Origin: Adineta vaga
Lineage: Eukaryota > Animalia > Rotifera
Length of the DNA stretch: 64,000 nucleotides
Assembly: GCA_021613535.1 (NCBI GenBank)
Contig: CP075497.1
Coordinates: 1,116,001 to 1,180,000, forward strand
Reading direction: 5' to 3'
Numbering within the stretch: the stretch's first letter is position 1; every line of letters begins with the position of its first letter. Under the pieces are notes generated by a model, which did not search any database, had not been told where the DNA came from, and saw only the letters and a program-made list of their open reading frames with translations. Both the position numbers and the translations under genes were made by a program. This document shows, in pieces, positions 15,998-25,745 of this stretch.

Positions 15998-16294
15998 GCG
16001 ACACCTGGTGAACACGTTGACTTTTTCGTGCATCAAAGAGGTTTTCCCTATAGATCCCCATTGGCGATTTAATCGAGATCGATATTATTTTAAAATAAAT
16101 GTAATCTTGATGAATTGAATTGATTTTTCAAAGTTTCGTTTTTAACTAATAAAAATATAATTCGTTTCTTTCCAATGAATATGCATTGGCACATAAATGT
16201 ACTTTTATTTTGTGTTACTCACACTATACACTTGCACTTTGTAATGACACGCTCCGATGTACTTTTTCCATATTTTCCTACAGATAAAACATCG

Positions 16295-17461
16295 ATGAAT
16301 CAAGCAGTGTGTACAATGGCTGAAAAATTGAATATTATTATCGTAGGTGCATCGTATCTTGGCAGCAAGGTTGCACGAGCTCTCGCAAAATCAATGCCTC
16401 AAGATTTAGCTGCAAATCATCGTATTTTATTAATCGAGCGAAATTCCCACTTTTCACATCTATTTACGTTTCCAAGGTTTGTTGTTGTACCGAATCACGA
16501 ACAGAAAGCATTTATTCCTATGAACAAAATATTTAGTGAAGCACAGTGCAATGCACAAATTATTTATGCTTCGGTAGAAACTATCAATCAAAATGAAGTA
16601 GTTCTCGATAGAGACACATCATTTGGACGTAGATTACCGTGGCATATATTAGTTATGGCAACTGGTTCGAGATTACCACCACCTGCAAATATGCCAACAA
16701 CAACAAAACTTGATTCAGTGCAATATTTAAAAGATTTACAAGAAAGAATACGAACTGCGAAAAGTATCGCATTGATCGGTGGTGGTGCTGTTGGTGTACA
16801 AATTTCAACGGATATAAAAAGTTATTATCCTGATAAAGAAGTACATTTAATACATTCGAGAGATCGATTAATGTCGAGATTTCATTCAAGTCTTGGTGAT
16901 GTTGTTCTTCAATCGTGTAAAGATCTTGGGATTAACGTTCATTTAGGATCGAGAGCAAAACTTCCCGATACAAATGGACCTTGTGTAATAGAACTTCAAT
17001 CTGGACAGACAATATCTGTAGATTTCTATTTAAAATGTACAGGGCAGATTATTAATTCCGAACCTATTCGTGAATTAGTAAAAGAAAGTATTAATTCGGA
17101 TGGAACTATTCATGTCTTACCTACTTTACAAATTGAAAAACATCCTCGAATTCTTGCAGTTGGTGATGTAAATGATCTATTACAAATTAAATCAGTCCGA
17201 CCTGCTATAGGTCAAGTAGAAGTTGCTCAGAAAAATATTATTTCTCTTTTGCGAGGTGAAACTCCGGAAGCTAAATTTGAAAATAACGCAGCTGGAATTC
17301 ATCTTACACTTGGACTCAAACGTGATGTCTATTGCAAACAGACTCAAGATGGTTCGTCTCCGGCTAATATTGAAGTAGAAAATGACGAAGGACTTGAAGA
17401 TATGGGAGTCGAATTTATGTGGGATGAACTCGGTGCGGATAAAAATGATTTTTGGGCTTAA
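16295..17461 (+). CDS. AMID/AIFM2 (FSP1)-like FAD/NAD(P)H oxidoreductase, fungal-type
   Basis: FAD motif NIIIVGASYLG, ILLIERNSHFSHLFTFPRF..HEQKAFIP, LVMATGS, NAD motif IALIGGGAVGVQ and ILAVGDV. The start is probably ATG 16295 or 16316, after a CTACAG acceptor. Confidence 0.85.
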   Translation: MNQAVCTMAEKLNIIIVGASYLGSKVARALAKSMPQDLAANHRILLIERNSHFSHLFTFPRFVVVPNHEQKAFIPMNKIFSEAQCNAQIIYASVETINQNEVVLDRDTSFGRRLPWHILVMATGSRLPPPANMPTTTKLDSVQYLKDLQERIRTAKSIALIGGGAVGVQISTDIKSYYPDKEVHLIHSRDRLMSRFHSSLGDVVLQSCKDLGINVHLGSRAKLPDTNGPCVIELQSGQTISVDFYLKCTGQIINSEPIRELVKESINSDGTIHVLPTLQIEKHPRILAVGDVNDLLQIKSVRPAIGQVEVAQKNIISLLRGETPEAKFENNAAGIHLTLGLKRDVYCKQTQDGSSPANIEVENDEGLEDMGVEFMWDELGADKNDFWA

Positions 17462-17518: not shown

Positions 17519-20500
17519 TTATTGAAAAGAAATAAGATCATTTAGATGTTTGTCCATGTCATAAACATTAATTTCATCAATGGTTAATTTATTTGTTGTA
17601 TTCTGTTGATTTCTTTGTGAACTCCAACCAATTCTTTCATTCAGATTCTCTCGCGCACGCGTACTTGCCTCTTGAACTCGTGTTGCTCTCGTTTTCCGTA
17701 ACATTTCATACATTTTTAAGCCGTACTCAACCGTATGTATTCTATTTCGCCAATATTTAGGTGAGAATATGATACCCAATGCAGCTGCATCTTCAATCGC
17801 CATACATGCTCCTTGACTTTGATCAGGTAGCATGGGATGTGCAGCATCTCCAAGTAATGCTACACAGTCATTTACCCAATATGGATATGGTTGATGAATA
17901 ACCAATTTCCATAACTTAATATCTTCACAATGTTGGAAAATTGTCAATAAATCTGGATCAAGATCAGGAAAACGTTCGATTAGCATTGATGGTGTTGCAC
18001 TGAAATTCCAACCTTCTTCACTTTGATCATTATGAGAAGCTGGATAAAAACAATAGAATGATACAATCTCACCCGCACAACAAGGAGCTAAAACAATCTT
18101 ATTAATTCCGAAACCACCCCAAAATTCAATTGCATTATTCGGTGCAAAATCTTTCAAACCAAATTCCTTTACACGTGATGTCGAAACAATACAACGGTAA
18201 CATGCACTTGTTGACGGTATTGTTTTAGCTACAATTCCAATCAAACTACGTACTGTAGAACGAACACCATCAGCACCAATAATCAAATCGACAGATATTG
18301 TTTTACCTGTATCGAATCTTACAGTACGATTACGACAATCAATATCAATTGCTTTATGATCTACAACAATCATTACTCCTAAAGCTTTTGCTCTTATTTG
18401 TAATTGTTCATGAAGATCAATTCGATGAAACATATTGTAAACATAACCCCATTTTTCTTTATAATCACTCAAATCATAAACATCGTTGATTGTACCGTCT
18501 TTCCAATTGTGCATAATTAATTTTTGTAGAATAACAGATCTATAGAAGGAAAAATTTAACTGATGAATTTGTTATACAACAAAAACTACCAACCTTCCAG
18601 CAATCGTGTCGACACCCCACTCCTCGAGAAATTTCGTTCCATTTGCAGCAACAGAAATTGATGCACCGACTTCACTTGCAAAATGAGTTCGTTCATAGAC
18701 AGTAACTTCATGGCCATGTCTGCGTAGAGCGATAGCAGCTGATAAACCACCAATACCACAACCGATGATAGCCACTTTCAAAGTTGTAAACAGAGTTGAT
18801 TTGATCGCTCGTGCCAATTGTCGAATCGATGGATTAGCAAATAAGTGAATCGCATTGATCATAGGACAAATATCTTTTTGAATGAGAGAAAGCATTCGTA
18901 AAACAGTTAATGATGTTCCACCCATCTCGCTGAATGATTGATTTACATCCGCAGATTCACAACCAAGTACTTGACTGAAGATGTCACGTAGACGTTCTTC
19001 TAATTGTAAATCATTATATGAGAAGTTATTGGACGCTACATTTTGAATTTCTTCAAATTCATCTGGTAGAATAAGAGACAATTTGTCAATCTGATCAACT
19101 GTTGACTTTGTTGAAAATATCTGAGAAAATATCACTTGAAGTTTTCGAGCCATTTTCTCAATCGTATTTTCATCAAAAACATCACGTGAACCATAAACAT
19201 TACATAACAATTTTCCATTTTCACTTGTTGGATCGTAAACGAACATTGTATTTAAATCAAATAAAGTTGCTTCATGTAATCGTTCAACTGATACTTGTTG
19301 CAAATTTGTTCCATCCAAAGAGAATTTATGAATATCAGAAGATACAGTAAGAAGTTCAAATAAAATATCAAGAAATGAAACATTTGAATAATTAACTCGA
19401 AAATCTGCAAGAATATTTTGTAATGGATAAGAAGTATGTTGAAAAATTGCTAAACAATTCTCTTGAACTTGTTTAACAAGATTCTCCAATGACCATTGAC
19501 AATTAAGTTGAAGTCGAAATGGTAATGTGGCAACAAACATTCCAATAAGATTCTGTAATTCATTTCTATATCGATTAGAATGTAAACAACTAAAGCATAA
19601 ATCATTTTCTCCATCAGTTAATTTAAATAAATATAAATAAAATACACTCATTGCTAATTGAAATGGTGTTACATGATATAAAGTTACAAATTTAAGAAAT
19701 TCTATGCAAATCTCATCATTGAAATAAATCTGAGTAACAAAATGATAACCCGATCGATAATCTGTGGATAAACAATGTCGATCAACAGGTAATGATAATG
19801 AACGAATGAAATTATAATCTTTTAATTGAGAATACCAAAATTCATGTGATTCTTTCATATCAATTAAACGTTCGTGTATAGCACTATCGATACATTGAAG
19901 AAGATTTTTATCAATAGATAATGAACTATCAGTTGTATAAGCAAATGAAAGATCATTGAGAAAAATTGAAACTGATGTTCCATCGAATACTAAATGATGG
20001 ATTGTGAATATAATTAAATCATTCATTTTTAATATATTTTCATGATGACGACGAATTATATGACAATACAAAACACGTCCTTTAGATAAATCAAACAAAT
20101 CACAACGATTTACAATTTTTCTAATAATTTCATCAATTTCAACATCGTTGTTGACATTAATTACTGAAAAACCATATAGTTCTTCATTATTACTATTAAA
20201 ACAATGTTGAATGATCATTCCATTGATATCGAGATAAAATCCTGTACGTAAAATTTGATGTTTTGTAATAACAGTGTGTAATGCTCGATGTAATCGATCA
20301 ATCGATAAAGGATTATTGATCGATAAAATTTGATAAACCAATGGAATGACGTACATAAAATTGTTTTGTTTAGATGGAAAACGAATTTGTTCATCGAGAA
20401 AGATTCGTTCTTGTGCAAATGTTACTCTACCTACAAATATAAACAATCGCAAGAAGATTTTCAATAAATTTAAATTTTACCTTGAGTAAGATGCAATGGA

Positions 20501-23500
20501 AACCAAGATTCTTCAAGATTATTTTTTGTTGAAATCACTTGAGAAATCAAACGAGAATGATCGAGAATGGTTGAATATGTAAAGAGATTTGTAATTGAAA
20601 GTGAATTGATCTTTAATTTAAATGTAATTTGATATCGATAGAAGAGTTTCATTACAAGAAGAGAATGTCCACCGATAGTGAAGAGATTTGAATCGATTGA
20701 AATTTCATCACGATGGAAAATATCACACCAGAGTTGATGAACAAGAATTTCAATTTGATTATTTGGTCTTTTCAATTCGAAATTATTCGCAATGGAAAAA
20801 TTACGATGAGAAAGACTTTTTCGATCGATTTTTCCATTTTCATTTCTCGGGAATTGTTTAAGAATAATAAACATCGATGGTATCATATGAATCGGCAAAT
20901 AAGATCGACAATGTTCATATAAATCTTGTTCTGTTATATCACAACTTTCGATATATGCAATTAAATGATCATTATTCGATTTCATTACAACACATGACGA
21001 GATTGATGTTTTCAGTAAACATTGTTGAATTTCATCAAGTTCAATTCGTTGTCCATGAAATTTAATTTGATAATCTTTTCGATATTGATAATGAAGAAAA
21101 CCATTTTGATCTAAATGAACAATATCACCTGTTTTATAAAATATTTCATCATCAATTGCAATTAGAACATCTTTTGTTAAATCATCACGTTGAAAATATC
21201 CATCAAATACACCAACACCAGTTACAACTAATTCCCCACTTTGATTAACAATACATGATTGAAGAAATTCATCCAAAATCAAACATCGATAATTTGGAAT
21301 TGGTAAACCAATTGGAATAGTTTCTTTATCTTTGAGAATATTTACAAGATGAAATGTACAATCAATTGTTGTTTCACTTGGTCCATATGTATTCCATACA
21401 CGAGCATTTTTAAATAAAGAATTAGATAAATTTTTAACAAGATCAATTCGACTAACATCACCTACAATAGTTTAAGCTTAAAGATTTTAATAAATATAAG
21501 AAATTTCTTACCACCAATATCGAGAGTTCGTAAAGTAGATATTTTAGATTTTAATACGAATTCATTGAGATTATTGAGATATGATGGAACACTTTGTAAA
21601 TAAGAAATTTGTTTTTCATTTAGAATTCGAAGAAGATAATCAATATTAAGATTTCCTTGAGGATGAAGCATAATTAAACTCGCACCAATCATTAATGTCC
21701 CAAGAATTTCTTGAAGATGAACATCATATGAACATTGAGCCATTTGAAGAATTGTATCTTGATTATTTATTAAATCAATAGAACAAAGTGATTGAATACA
21801 TTCAATAACATTTTCATGTCGAATTTGAATCGATTTTGGAATTCCTGTTGAACCACTTGTAAATATAATATATGCAATATTTTCATTTGTTATTCTTATA
21901 TTTGATAAACAATCAATATTAAGATCATCACAACATAATATCGAATCGATATCTATCAAAAGAAAATCATTATCAACAAACTTCGACATTGTTAACCAAT
22001 GAGTTAAAATAACACGACTTTTCATTTGTTGAATAAGTGTATTTAAACGATATTGAGGATCATTGGGTGATAATGGACAATAAATACATCCAATCATTTC
22101 AATCGCAACAATACCGATTATCTAAATACAAAAATATTTGCTCATCGTTCTATATTCTATACTATATAAACTTACCATTGATAAACTTCGTTCAACACAT
22201 TGGCAAATAATATCACCTGGAATGATATGATAGATATTTAAGAGATTTAATGATACTATTTGAGTATAATGTAAAAGTTCAGCATAAGTAAAAGATTGAT
22301 CATCAAGTTCGACGGAGATTTTTTGAGAATATTTTCTAATTTGATCAATTAGTTTATGATGAAATGGAGTGAATGAAGAAAATGATCTTTGTGTATTATT
22401 CATAGTTTTCATAAGTAATTTTTCATCAGATAATAATAAAGAATATTGATTTAGTTCGTTATCAGGAAAAAGAAATATTTGTTTTAATAACGAATGAAAT
22501 CGTTGAGAAATTGTAGAAATTTTTGATTGATCATATAAATCTAATGAAGCATTGATTGTCACGGAAATTGTTTCATTTCGACGATGTTCAAAAAGTGAAC
22601 AAACCATATCGAATTTTGCAATATTTCCCGTAAAAAATCGTCGATCGATAAAGTTCAATGAATTTTCTTGATTAATTTCGATATTTTGTTCATTATCATC
22701 AATTTTTGTTTCGATAAGAAAAAGTGTTTGAAGAAATGAAGATCGTAAATTAGAATTTAATTTCACCATTTCTTGATAAGGAAAATTTGAATATGGGAAG
22801 ATTTCTAACCAAGTTTGTTGAATTCGATGAGAAAATTCAAGAAATGTTTCAAAAGGATTAATTTTGATAAAAAATGGAATTGTATTTACGAAGAAACCAA
22901 GAAGATTTTCAAGTTCATATTGAGATCGATTTGCAGCGACAATACCCGTGCAAAATTCTAATTGATCATTATTTGAGAATTTGAAAAGAAAAACGAAAAA
23001 AGCAGCAAGACCAACTTGAAAAAGTGTCAAATTCAATTGAGATATAATTTGATTTAAAGATTTAACAATTGTTTGATCTAAATCAAATGTAATTGTATAA
23101 CCTTTACCTGTTCTTATAGGATAAGTTTGTTGTTGATTAATTGAAGGATGAATTGATGTTAAAATATTTTCCCAATATTGTCGAACATTTGACCAATCGT
23201 CTAATCTTTCATATTGAGAATAATCAAGATAAGTTAAACATTCTTGTTCATCATAAGATAACTTATCTGTACGAAGAACTTGACGAAGATCATTGATAAA
23301 TATTTGAATTGAATTTCCATCAATTGCAATATGATGAAAATTGAAAATAATTAAATCATTATGTTTTAAAACATTTTCAGATGATTGAAGAAGTAAATGA
23401 CAACGAAATACTTTGCCTTGTTCAAGATTAAATAATAATCGATTAGTTTCTTCATCATAAAAAATCTTTTCTATTTCAATTTCATTTGTTACACGTGTCA

Positions 23501-25745
23501 TTTCGATATGATAATGTTCAGATGATAATGGAAGAATTTTTTGTATTAATTTTTCTTGATCAAATAGTATTGCTGTACGAAGAATTGAATGTTTATTAAC
23601 AAGAAGTCGAAGATTTTGATGAAGTCGATCAATTGATAATGAGCTAATAGATTTGAATTTATAAATCAATAATTCATTGAAAACAGAAACTTCTTCATGA
23701 AAACGAACTTGTTCGTCCATCCAAAGACGATTTTGTGCAAATGAAGCAACGCCTATAGACAAAGCAATTCAAATATTTAGTTCAGCTAAATCAATGATTT
23801 ACCTTGTGTTAAATGGAGTGGTGTCCAAATGAGTTTTGATTTTGGTTTACAATTTAATAAGAGTTGAACATGATCGGCAATTGTTGGAGTGAGAAAAAAA
23901 TCGAGAACGTTAAGTTGCATATCGGGAGCGAAATGAAATTGATAATAATTGAAAAATTGGATTAATGATAAGGATGAACCACCCAATGCGAAACAATTTG
24001 CATGACGAGAAATGGAATTCAATTGTAATACATTGCACCATAGTTTGTGTAGTTTCTCTTCTAATTCTGAGATTGGTTTATCAACAATCTGAATGTTGTT
24101 GATGAGTAAGGATGGAATTGGAAGTTGTTTTCGATCGATTTTTCCATTCGAATTCAATGGAAATTTATCAAGAATGATGATATAAGATGGAATCATATAT
24201 TGACGAAGATGTTTATGACAATGATTTCGAATTTCTTCAATATTAAGATCGGAATTATGCGAAACAATATAAGCAACTAATAAATCTTTATTTTGTAAAG
24301 ATTTTGTCACAAGACAATCGGAGATTTGATTTCGAGACCAATTCATAATTGTATCTTCAATCTCTGTTGTTTCAACTCGTTGCCCATGAATTTTAATTTG
24401 AAAATCTGCACGTCCAGAATGAACGAATTCATTCCATTCATTATATCGAGCTAAATCTCCTGTTTTTAAATAAATCTTATTATCAATAGTAACAAGAATA
24501 TCATTTGTACGTTGTCGATCATTTAAATAACAATTGAACAAAGTTGGTCCTACAAAAGAATACAAATCATTTGATAATTTGATAATCAAAATCAATTGCT
24601 ATTCACCTCCTATAAGAAGTTGACCAATTTGATTTAAATTGATCGTCTTATCAATAATATTATTTTGTTCATCAATAAGTAAACAATGAACATTGGTGAA
24701 TGGACAACCAATCGGTATAATTGTATTATAAACATCTGACAATCGACAACCAAGAACTCCATTGCATTCTGACATTCCATATTGAGAATTGATTCGAATA
24801 GTCGAGAGATTTAAATAACTAAGAAATTTTATCCATTGTTGAGGATTTATTGCTTCACCTAAAAAAAGAATTATTATACATATCGAAATATCTATTACTA
24901 TTTCAATTACCTGTTATACATAAATTACGCACAAATTTGAATGTATCAAACTGTTGACTAATCTCAAAAAAATCGATCAAAGCTCGAATAATTGCTGGAA
25001 CAATGATCATTGTTGTTACTTGTTGATTTATTAGAATTTTCGATAAATACGACATATCCAAATGTCCACCGGGTCGTAAAAGTACAACGGAACCACCTAC
25101 AACCAATGGTAATGAAATTTCTGATATTTGTAAAATCCATGTACAAGTAGAAAGTTGAAGAATTTGATCTTGGATTGTGTACATATTTGCATTCCATTGA
25201 ATATAAGCTTCGTTACTTGCTGCAAAACTTTTATGAGTATGAAGAATTGCTTTTGGTCGACCAGTTGTTCCTGATGTAGAAATAATAAATGCAGGACCAT
25301 TTTCTATACAATATGGAAGTTTATCAATATCTTCATTTTGTAATGATGGGAAAAGGATTTCTTCTAGGAAAATAACGTGTTTAACTATATCGGTTGGAAA
25401 TTGTTTGTATGTCAGTTGATGAACTAAAACATATTGACTTTGAATTTGTTCTAAGATGGAAAGAAGACGTGATGAAGAATCTGTTGGATTTAATGGACAA
25501 TATACACCATCAATGCACATAATACCTAAGAATCCACAGACCATTTCTAAACTACGTTCAACAAATTGATAAATGATTTGACCTTTAACAATGTTTAAAT
25601 TATGTAAATAATCAACGACATGTTCAACTTGTTCAATCAATTCACTGTATGTCCACGATTGAAAATCAAGGATTAGAGCGATTTTTTGAGGATGAACTTC
25701 AGCCATATGAAATAGTTGATGTAAAACATAATATGATGACAACAT
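17519..25745 (-). CDS. 8-exon NRPS A-T-C-A-T-C-T fused to a C-terminal FAD-dependent monooxygenase, about 2619 aa
   Basis: Exons 25745-24911, 24858-24607, 24549-23803, 23752-22176, 22121-21512, 21461-20481, 20430-18594 and 18539-17519. All seven introns are GT-AG, 50-57 bp and phase-consistent; the spliced CDS is 7860 nt. A domains: TSGTTGRPK/TSGSTGIPK, YGMSE/YGPSET, KTGD, NGKIDRK. T domains: LGGSSL, IGGHSL, MGGTSL. C domains: HHIAIDG, HHLVFDG. Monooxygenase: GCGIGG, GADG, LLGDAAHPM. Confidence 0.9.

Follow-up and report, generated by a model that had tools for sequence, protein, structure and literature searches.

How a peptide assembly line in an animal genome comes to end in a flavoprotein, and what that flavoprotein does there, is the question raised by a gene of the bdelloid rotifer Adineta vaga. 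The gene occupies the minus strand at 17519..25745 of the window, i.e. the 64,000-nucleotide stretch of contig CP075497.1 that was analysed, which places it at 1,133,519-1,141,745 of Chrom_6 in the Av20 assembly (100.8 Mb in six contigs). It encodes a nonribosomal peptide synthetase (NRPS) with the domain order A1-T1-C1-A2-T2-C2-T3 (A, adenylation; T, carrier; C, condensation), followed in a single frame by a complete group A flavin adenine dinucleotide (FAD) monooxygenase. The gene is real, intact and conserved under selection, and its anatomy and history can be reconstructed with high confidence: a bdelloid NRPS of bacterial affinity appears to have been joined, once and within the Adineta lineage, to a stand-alone monooxygenase gene of fungal type. 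The chemistry that follows from this union can be proposed more tentatively.

The gene comprises eight exons (E1, 25745..24911; E2, 24858..24607; E3, 24549..23803; E4, 23752..22176; E5, 22121..21512; E6, 21461..20481; E7, 20430..18594; E8, 18539..17519) and seven introns (intron 1, 24859..24910, 52 nt; intron 2, 24550..24606, 57 nt; intron 3, 23753..23802, 50 nt; intron 4, 22122..22175, 54 nt; intron 5, 21462..21511, 50 nt; intron 6, 20431..20480, 50 nt; intron 7, 18540..18593, 54 nt, GTTGGT..AG), all on the minus strand. The introns are uniformly GT..AG, short (50-57 nt) and AT-rich, and splicing of intron 7 requires a weaker donor, GTTGGT at 18593. The spliced exons sum to 7860 nt, i.e. 2619 codons from the first ATG plus a TAA stop, with zero internal stops; counted from the second methionine, Met14, the product is 2606 residues long, exactly the length of the published manual annotation. 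Exons and pieces of open reading frame (ORF) were searched one by one, and questions that require the full length were asked of the public A. ricciae orthologue P0292 (CAF1364062.1, 2605 aa). The separate ORF pieces gave Pfam matches to AMP-binding, AMP-binding_C and PP-binding, then Condensation, then again AMP-binding, AMP-binding_C and PP-binding, then Condensation, PP-binding and an FAD Rossmann fold, and finally FAD_binding_3. The second Condensation match, its PP-binding domain and the start of the Rossmann fold share one uninterrupted 630-residue ORF (18575-20464), and the junction between T3 and monooxygenase (18811..18746) falls within E7 with no stop or start between the two. An independent read set of 2013 yields a contig (X6, 1339 nt, ~105x) that is unbroken over 17733-19071 and covers E8, intron 7 and the junction. 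A preliminary description of the locus, made from the sequence alone, had proposed eight exons in one continuous frame and a junction inside exon 7 that is no splicing artefact, and had raised misassembly at the junction as a concern; the exon model and the ORF bear out the two proposals, and the 2013 contig answers the concern. Separately, an X6 contig carries a joint that skips 799 nt in exon 7 (window 19578-20378), with ends AA..GG and only 20 nt on its shorter side; the most likely cause is that similar sequences or haplotypes were misjoined in assembly, and not a real deletion.

The domains, likewise all on the minus strand, are A1 (24140..25709, spanning E1, E2 and E3, with its A10 lysine present), T1 (23861..24058, GGSSL at 23983..23969), C1 (22419..23747, HHIAIDG at 23336..23316, labelled Condensation_LCL in the published annotation), A2 (20830..22340, the start approximate, taking in the end of E4, E5 and E6), T2 (20560..20742, GGHSL at 20673..20659) and C2 (19058..20425, HHLVFDG at 19999..19979). 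T3 (18803..18997) has no A domain of its own and carries its attachment serine in FSEMGGTSL (Ser motif at 18922..18908). A short linker (18782..18802, ..KSTLFTTLK.., within exon 7) leads into the group A monooxygenase (FAD_binding_3, 17522..18781), which is split by intron 7 and retains the fingerprints GCGIGG (18763..), GADG (18277..) and GDAAH (17851..). The flavoprotein is complete across the intron, since positions 6-65 of the NCBIfam 3-hydroxybenzoate 6-monooxygenase profile are matched in E7 and positions 75-351 in E8. The A domains show the core motifs SGTTGRPK and SGSTGIPK, GRADFQIK, and NGKID twice (the A10 lysines), the three carriers show the phosphopantetheine-attachment serine motifs GGSSL, GGHSL and GGTSL, and the two Condensation matches, each from a separate piece, have E = 8e-56 and 1e-47. 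The protein thus has what defines a modular NRPS (A domains with the A3, A5, A8 and A10 core motifs, carrier serines, HHxxxDG condensation domains) and what defines a group A flavoprotein (an FAD_binding_3 fold with GxGxxG, DG and GD in one polypeptide), and it lacks a dedicated release domain: in no exon did Pfam match Thioesterase, NAD_binding_4 (reductase) or a third Condensation domain. Both the inventory of intact catalytic motifs first reported (two HHxxxDG, three carrier serines, both A10 lysines and GxGxxG/DG/GD) and the reported lack of a thioesterase, reductase or terminal C domain therefore stand. An AF2 model of the T3-monooxygenase didomain gives the monooxygenase a pLDDT >90 and T3 a pLDDT of 45-75, with only four sequences covering T3.

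Conservation across the genus is extensive. P0292 of A. ricciae is colinear with the A. vaga protein and has the same Pfam order, at identities of 73-89% (E1 83%, E7 73%, E8 89%); it reads through the E7/E8 junction in agreement with the splice model, and its gene conserves all seven intron positions. Three A. steineri proteins are 77-78% identical over T3 and monooxygenase. Compared with A. ricciae, the ratio of nonsynonymous to synonymous substitution (dN/dS, Nei-Gojobori) is 0.08-0.24 per exon at dS of ~0.5-0.7, well below 1 in every exon, with the tightest constraint on the monooxygenase (0.055 for the N-terminal piece of the domain, 0.08 for E8). The FSEMGGTSL core of T3 is invariant in all five of the fused proteins aligned, from three species.

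The gene itself is not new to the literature. In Nowell et al. 2024 (PMC11258130), Supplementary Data 9 contains the entry "region6.2: 1119233..1156595, intact, 2606 aa, UbiH" on Chrom_6 of Av20, and the coding pieces of this Cluster 6.2 equal the window ORFs plus 1,116,000; because 2606 residues from Met14 matches, the published manual annotation has the same exon structure, flavoprotein included. Of the roughly 40 A. vaga clusters in that table, just one bears the accessory label "UbiH", and the main text of the study never mentions a monooxygenase. Suring et al. 2023 (PMC10531068) counted 69 NRPS clusters in A. vaga and do not mention a monooxygenase either. Proteins of the same Pfam architecture are also public, namely P0292 of A. 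ricciae and P0294, P0295 and P0296 of A. steineri. The architecture had at first been taken to be undescribed; this holds for the fusion, which is nowhere discussed, and does not hold for the gene, which is catalogued and has public orthologues. How the fusion arose and what chemistry it performs had not been analysed before, and what is added here is the fungal affinity of the monooxygenase, the fusion within the lineage and the unusual A1 pocket. No characterised enzyme was found in which a group A monooxygenase immediately follows a carrier domain that lacks an A domain.

The two parts of the protein have different nearest relatives. A HMMER search with E8 against proteins of any length returned stand-alone proteins of ~415-435 aa at 46-57% identity, followed by a drop to ~35%; no NRPS-length protein is among the best 150 matches, and the named close relatives are all fungal (Hirsutella, Ogataea, Aspergillus, Fusarium, Saccharata, Saitozyma). 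The A1-T1-C1 part of P0292 instead matched Adineta and Rotaria bdelloid NRPSs at 31-59% and then bacterial ones at 24-29% (Tumebacillus, Caldithrix, Bacteroidota, myxobacteria), with no fungal protein in the top 120. C2 has >80 paralogues in the A. vaga genome, the best 49-52% identical, and its best PDB matches are LgrA and TycC; by these matches it appears to be an ordinary elongation-type C domain. The locus is the same as that catalogued among the bdelloid NRPS and polyketide synthase genes (Nowell et al. 2024; Suring et al. 2023), intronised and ~1.1 Mb from a chromosome end, and it has A, T and C domains nearest to those of other bdelloid NRPSs and then to bacterial ones. The assembly-line part is thus a two-module member of the large bdelloid NRPS family.

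Several features indicate that the two parts met inside the rotifer lineage. When NRPS-length candidates alone were considered, a query of T3 plus monooxygenase found Adineta proteins and one distant bacterial protein, P0298, and in the ESM Atlas stand-alone clusters only. A. steineri has two stand-alone monooxygenases, P0002 and P0003, respectively 82% and 68% identical to E8, with no NRPS sequence within 10 kb upstream of either. Their genes (L009, L010) are interrupted at the exact codon position of intron 7, as is also the case in A. ricciae. The stand-alone proteins start MES..., and the linkers of the fused A. steineri proteins hold an in-frame ...MES(T/I)P.LTP... directly before the Rossmann strand, a segment that is shortened in A. 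ricciae and A. vaga according to the junction alignment; this "MES" is the former initiator of the stand-alone gene, a fossil start. Domain trees (quick IQ-TREE runs, support as SH-aLRT) unite rotifer and fungal sequences in one clade (100%) and make the eight Adineta copies monophyletic (97-100%), with P0003 branching first, then P0002, then all six fused copies as one group (92-93). In the outgroup-rooted tree the rotifer clade is sister to the fungal one; the donor lineage is not pinned down by this, since fungal monophyly has support of only 74% with the rotifers as sister.

The evidence points to one fusion within Adineta rather than to an intact transfer. The simplest reading is that one fungal-type gene was acquired, gained introns and was duplicated, and that, ahead of the split of the three species, a single read-through fusion would then have joined one copy to an NRPS whose end was C-T; assembly inside the animal lineage is well supported by the shared intron position, the fossil methionine, the nesting of the fused copies and the lack of a microbial counterpart. 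The preliminary description had arrived at much of this: a monooxygenase like the fungal salicylate-hydroxylase-like group A enzymes (the nearest relatives are indeed stand-alone and fungal, at about 50%), a horizontally acquired and intronised bdelloid NRPS (bdelloid NRPSs are nearest, bacteria next, and introns are present), and a chimera built in an animal genome from separately acquired parts, for which intron 7, "MES", the nesting and the missing microbial counterpart now speak. Of the checks it had suggested, the public domain-architecture search found the fused form in Adineta only, apart from the dissimilar P0298, and the monooxygenase phylogeny placed the fused copies as one group inside a grade of stand-alone rotifer sequences; intact transfer from a microbe, which it had named as one of the outcomes that would speak against its view, was looked for and no closely similar microbial fusion was found.

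A number of related rotifer loci are recorded here as observations in their own right. A. ricciae carries, upstream of the orthologue (L011:1-5888), a tandem second NRPS-monooxygenase copy in which the counterpart of exon 6 and the initial ~190 residues of exon 7 are missing (the end of A2, T2 and the start of C2), and the monooxygenase part of which is 90% identical to A. vaga E8. In A. steineri, P0295 (3582 aa) has GCDIGG in place of GCGIGG in the FAD dinucleotide-binding motif and may, on this substitution, be a decaying paralogue; the upstream module arrangements of the fused A. steineri proteins differ, which could reflect merged gene models. P0302 of the same species (L013:9993-16857) is an NRPS with C2 68% and T3 71% identical that stops ~15 codons after T3, immediately before a scaffold gap of 100 N, and is a possible unfused relative. 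The gene of the stand-alone P0003 stands head-to-head (L010:6868-8298) with a gene for a PF02458 (BAHD-type) acyltransferase, which may be another foreign gene, and the arrangement hints at a small metabolic pair.

Clues to the substrates come from the A domains, whose pocket residues were extracted from an alignment with 43 bacterial A domains; the same extraction recovers bacterial codes that we take to be canonical (Asn, Ser, Thr, Orn, Gly and others). The A1 code, ILSICTQGVK, has Ile at the position of the alpha-amino-binding Asp235 (codon at about 25136..25134) and is identical in A. ricciae. Because Ile replaces Asp235, A1 probably loads a carboxylic acid without an alpha-amino group, and its code is compatible with a non-amino starter, aryl or other, from which an aromatic ring could come. 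The A2 code, DVQQDGTIDK, retains Asp235 and Lys517 and has two acidic pocket residues, a pocket of amino-acid type that is predicted to load an amino acid.

There is a precedent for the A-less C-T end in the fungal diketopiperazine synthetases of the GliP type, which show the same order of seven NRPS domains. In GliP (A-T-C-A-T-C_T-T3) the terminal C_T-T3 pair performs cyclising release (PMC11610984). To speak of an enzyme without a release domain, as had been done, was thus an overstatement, correct insofar as no thioesterase, reductase or terminal C domain is found, whereas an A-less C-T end is itself a known release unit of GliP. The rotifer protein differs from GliP in that C2 appears to be of elongation type, belongs to the bdelloid family and has bacterial affinities, and in that a flavoprotein follows T3; among the A. 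vaga paralogues and PDB matches compared, C2 resembles elongation C domains, and it is LCL in the published annotation. A diketopiperazine also requires that both A domains load alpha-amino acids, and A1 has Ile at Asp235; a classical one of two amino acids is unlikely because A1 lacks that residue.

As to the monooxygenase, its best PDB matches are 8X38 (E = 8e-54) and 8GSM, then tropone 2-monooxygenase, 3-hydroxybenzoate 6-hydroxylase and NicC, all of them group A. The first two are fungal decarboxylative hydroxylases of phenolic acids (vanillate and 4-hydroxybenzoate 1-hydroxylases). In PcMNX1 (8X38) the general base is His247 and the carboxylate ligands are Gln79 and Tyr251 (PMC13559804). 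Gln79, His247 and Tyr251 are replaced in A. vaga and A. ricciae by Ser, Asn and Leu, respectively, and Tyr134 alone is kept; the Ser/Asn/Leu pattern also occurs in the stand-alone P0002 and in several fungal relatives, so that these active-site positions were not remodelled after the fusion. E8 by itself scores 117 bits against a cut-off of 459 for NF006021 and 88 against 446 for TIGR03219, in a query without the first ~70 residues of the domain, too few to explain the gap to these NCBIfam equivalog cut-offs. The domain therefore qualifies neither as a salicylate 1-monooxygenase or 3-hydroxybenzoate 6-monooxygenase equivalog nor, by its residues, as an MNX1-type enzyme. It shares fold and cofactor motifs with the fungal group A enzymes (PcMNX1, 8X38; 8GSM; 4BK1; salicylate hydroxylase), but differs from them in being fused to a carrier protein, in the replacement of Gln79, His247 and Tyr251 and in equivalog scores far under the cut-offs.

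Flavin redox domains embedded in NRPSs are known from other systems, e.g. the luciferase-like MOx domains of MtaG and MelG and the FMN-dependent, nitroreductase-like Ox domains of EpoB, BlmIII and the indigoidine synthetases. These are likewise flavin-dependent oxidising domains built into an NRPS, and they act on the growing or carrier-bound chain; however, they belong to unrelated families, and the rotifer domain is an NAD(P)H-dependent FAD_binding_3 fold that stands after the last carrier, not inside a module. A "Nitro_FMN" label occurs in other A. vaga clusters (Nowell et al. 2024 table, PMC11258130).

The explanation favoured overall, held with moderate confidence, begins with a stand-alone, intron-bearing monooxygenase gene in the Adineta lineage, into the 5' end of which one read-through fusion from T3 would have led before A. 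vaga, A. ricciae and A. steineri diverged. A1 and A2 would build an acyl-aminoacyl chain, with one further unit possible if A2 also loads T3, and the chain would terminate on T3. With NAD(P)H and O2 the monooxygenase would then hydroxylate an electron-rich aromatic ring in the product, either while this is bound to T3 or just after it has been released, and would thus tailor the product in cis without catalysing its release; the release itself would occur through chemistry of the C2/T3 type, spontaneous cyclisation or a hydrolase acting in trans. The tailoring role in cis is put forward tentatively, as plausible and somewhat short of probable, and is favoured because intact FAD and NAD(P)H motifs are under strong constraint, the T3 serine motif is invariant, the solved relatives are aromatic hydroxylases and A1 lacks Asp235.

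Several observations weigh against this explanation. Baseline expression of bdelloid NRPS genes is low in the published study (Nowell et al. 2024, PMC11258130). No sequencing run recorded as RNA was found for the stretch. No splice joints are present in three putative RNA runs (X1-X3), which gave short, low-depth pieces only, and one low-depth contig from such a run (X2, 18528-18686) is unspliced through intron 7; on expression of the gene these runs say nothing either way. T3 plus linker has a dN/dS of 0.66, higher than elsewhere, from 78 codons only, and the linker varies from ~9 to ~28 residues across species, which argues against a fixed docking geometry. The active-site residues checked are identical in fused and stand-alone rotifer copies, with no sign in the sequence of adaptation to a carrier-bound substrate. 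Because the base and carboxylate ligands of PcMNX1 are absent, aromatic hydroxylation draws on family-level knowledge only, and the domain belongs to an uncharacterised fungal "salicylate-hydroxylase-like" subfamily to which no substrate is assigned. The lack of spliced RNA and the retained intron would also suit an artefact of annotation or assembly (two transcripts or genes taken for one) or a decaying, non-functional locus, as would the broken GxGxxG (GxDxxG) of one A. steineri copy and the internal deletion in the second A. ricciae copy; such an account is nevertheless very improbable in view of T3 and Rossmann fold in one ORF with no stop or start between, the independent DNA contig across the junction, the continuous frame also found in A. 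ricciae and A. steineri, dN/dS well below 1 in every exon and a published manual annotation that lists the gene as intact. A microbial origin of the fused architecture, followed by its transfer as a whole, is less probable still, to the point of being nearly dismissible. A bacterial NRPS with a C-terminal FAD_binding_3 domain does exist, namely P0298 (L012, a Logan contig of 8764 nt, 65% GC, a single ORF), the only other NRPS-length protein of this kind found, but it is C-A-T-C-A-T-TE-FAD_binding_3 (TE, thioesterase), only 28% identical, with the thioesterase between the last T and the flavoprotein and another module order; it is an independent fusion, apparently uncharacterised. Intact transfer is opposed, in addition, by the different nearest relatives of the two halves (bacterial-like and fungal), by the stand-alone rotifer copies that share intron 7 and by the old start codon retained in the fused linker.

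With the fusion itself accepted, it is the role of the flavoprotein that is in contention. The monooxygenase may be joined to the NRPS without any channelling, i.e. be merely co-expressed with it and act on a free small molecule, whether to make a building block (e.g. a hydroxylated aromatic acid for A1) or to modify the released product; T3 would in that case present it with nothing. The identical active-site positions in fused, stand-alone rotifer and some fungal copies, the variable linker, the stand-alone nature of the fungal relatives, yeasts included, and the position of a similar domain in P0298 after a thioesterase, beyond the point of release, all suit this view; it is nonetheless considered rather unlikely, as three species have retained the fusion, the most constrained part of which is the monooxygenase, and as this directly follows a conserved A-less carrier. 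Oxidative release, the bolder of the two options in the preliminary description, would have the monooxygenase stand in for a thioesterase or reductase and itself free the chain from T3; this would explain why the most constrained domain sits where a release domain normally does in a protein with no thioesterase, reductase or terminal C domain. To our knowledge, however, group A flavoprotein monooxygenases hydroxylate activated aromatic rings and do not cleave thioesters. Other bdelloid NRPSs also lack a thioesterase, the PcMNX1 residues that support decarboxylative ipso-attack are missing, and release in GliP-type enzymes is already known to be the work of an A-less C-T end (PMC11610984), all of which leave oxidative release improbable. 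A broader form of the idea, about equally doubtful, would make T3 and flavoprotein a new NRPS termination module, in which the monooxygenase acts on the tethered chain and is needed for off-loading, through oxidative release or hydroxylation-triggered cyclisation; were it true, the union of a bacterial-type NRPS with a catabolic hydroxylase of fungal type would amount to an assembly-line solution invented within an animal genome.

Whichever role applies, bdelloids are the clearest case of animals stocked with microbial biosynthetic genes, and what this locus shows goes beyond acquisition: two foreign genes of different ancestry were joined after both had become ordinary intron-bearing rotifer genes, and purifying selection has maintained the fused gene in three species or more. 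Stand-alone copies, a shared intron and the fossil start codon of the linker keep the steps legible. The gene is thus a compact, tractable case in which an animal has not merely inherited an assembly line but rebuilt it. With 2.6 kaa and two A domains it is also small among NRPSs and hence a realistic target for heterologous expression.

Downstream of the gene, on the plus strand, lies a convergent intronless ORF for a Pyr_redox_2 flavoprotein (AIF/NDH-2-like, 16175-17461, 428 aa), the end of which is 57 nt from the NRPS stop codon. A "mini-cluster" of the two genes was considered and rejected, as the flavoprotein gene is not adjacent to the A. ricciae orthologue: no Pyr_redox_2 homologue is found beside it on L011, where the downstream neighbour encodes a 540-aa carboxylesterase on the same strand. 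Where the Pyr_redox_2 ORF ends, at window 17460, X3 and X6 contigs, which come from two studies, are both one base shorter than the window: either the site has an indel polymorphism, or one of the assemblies contains a consensus error.

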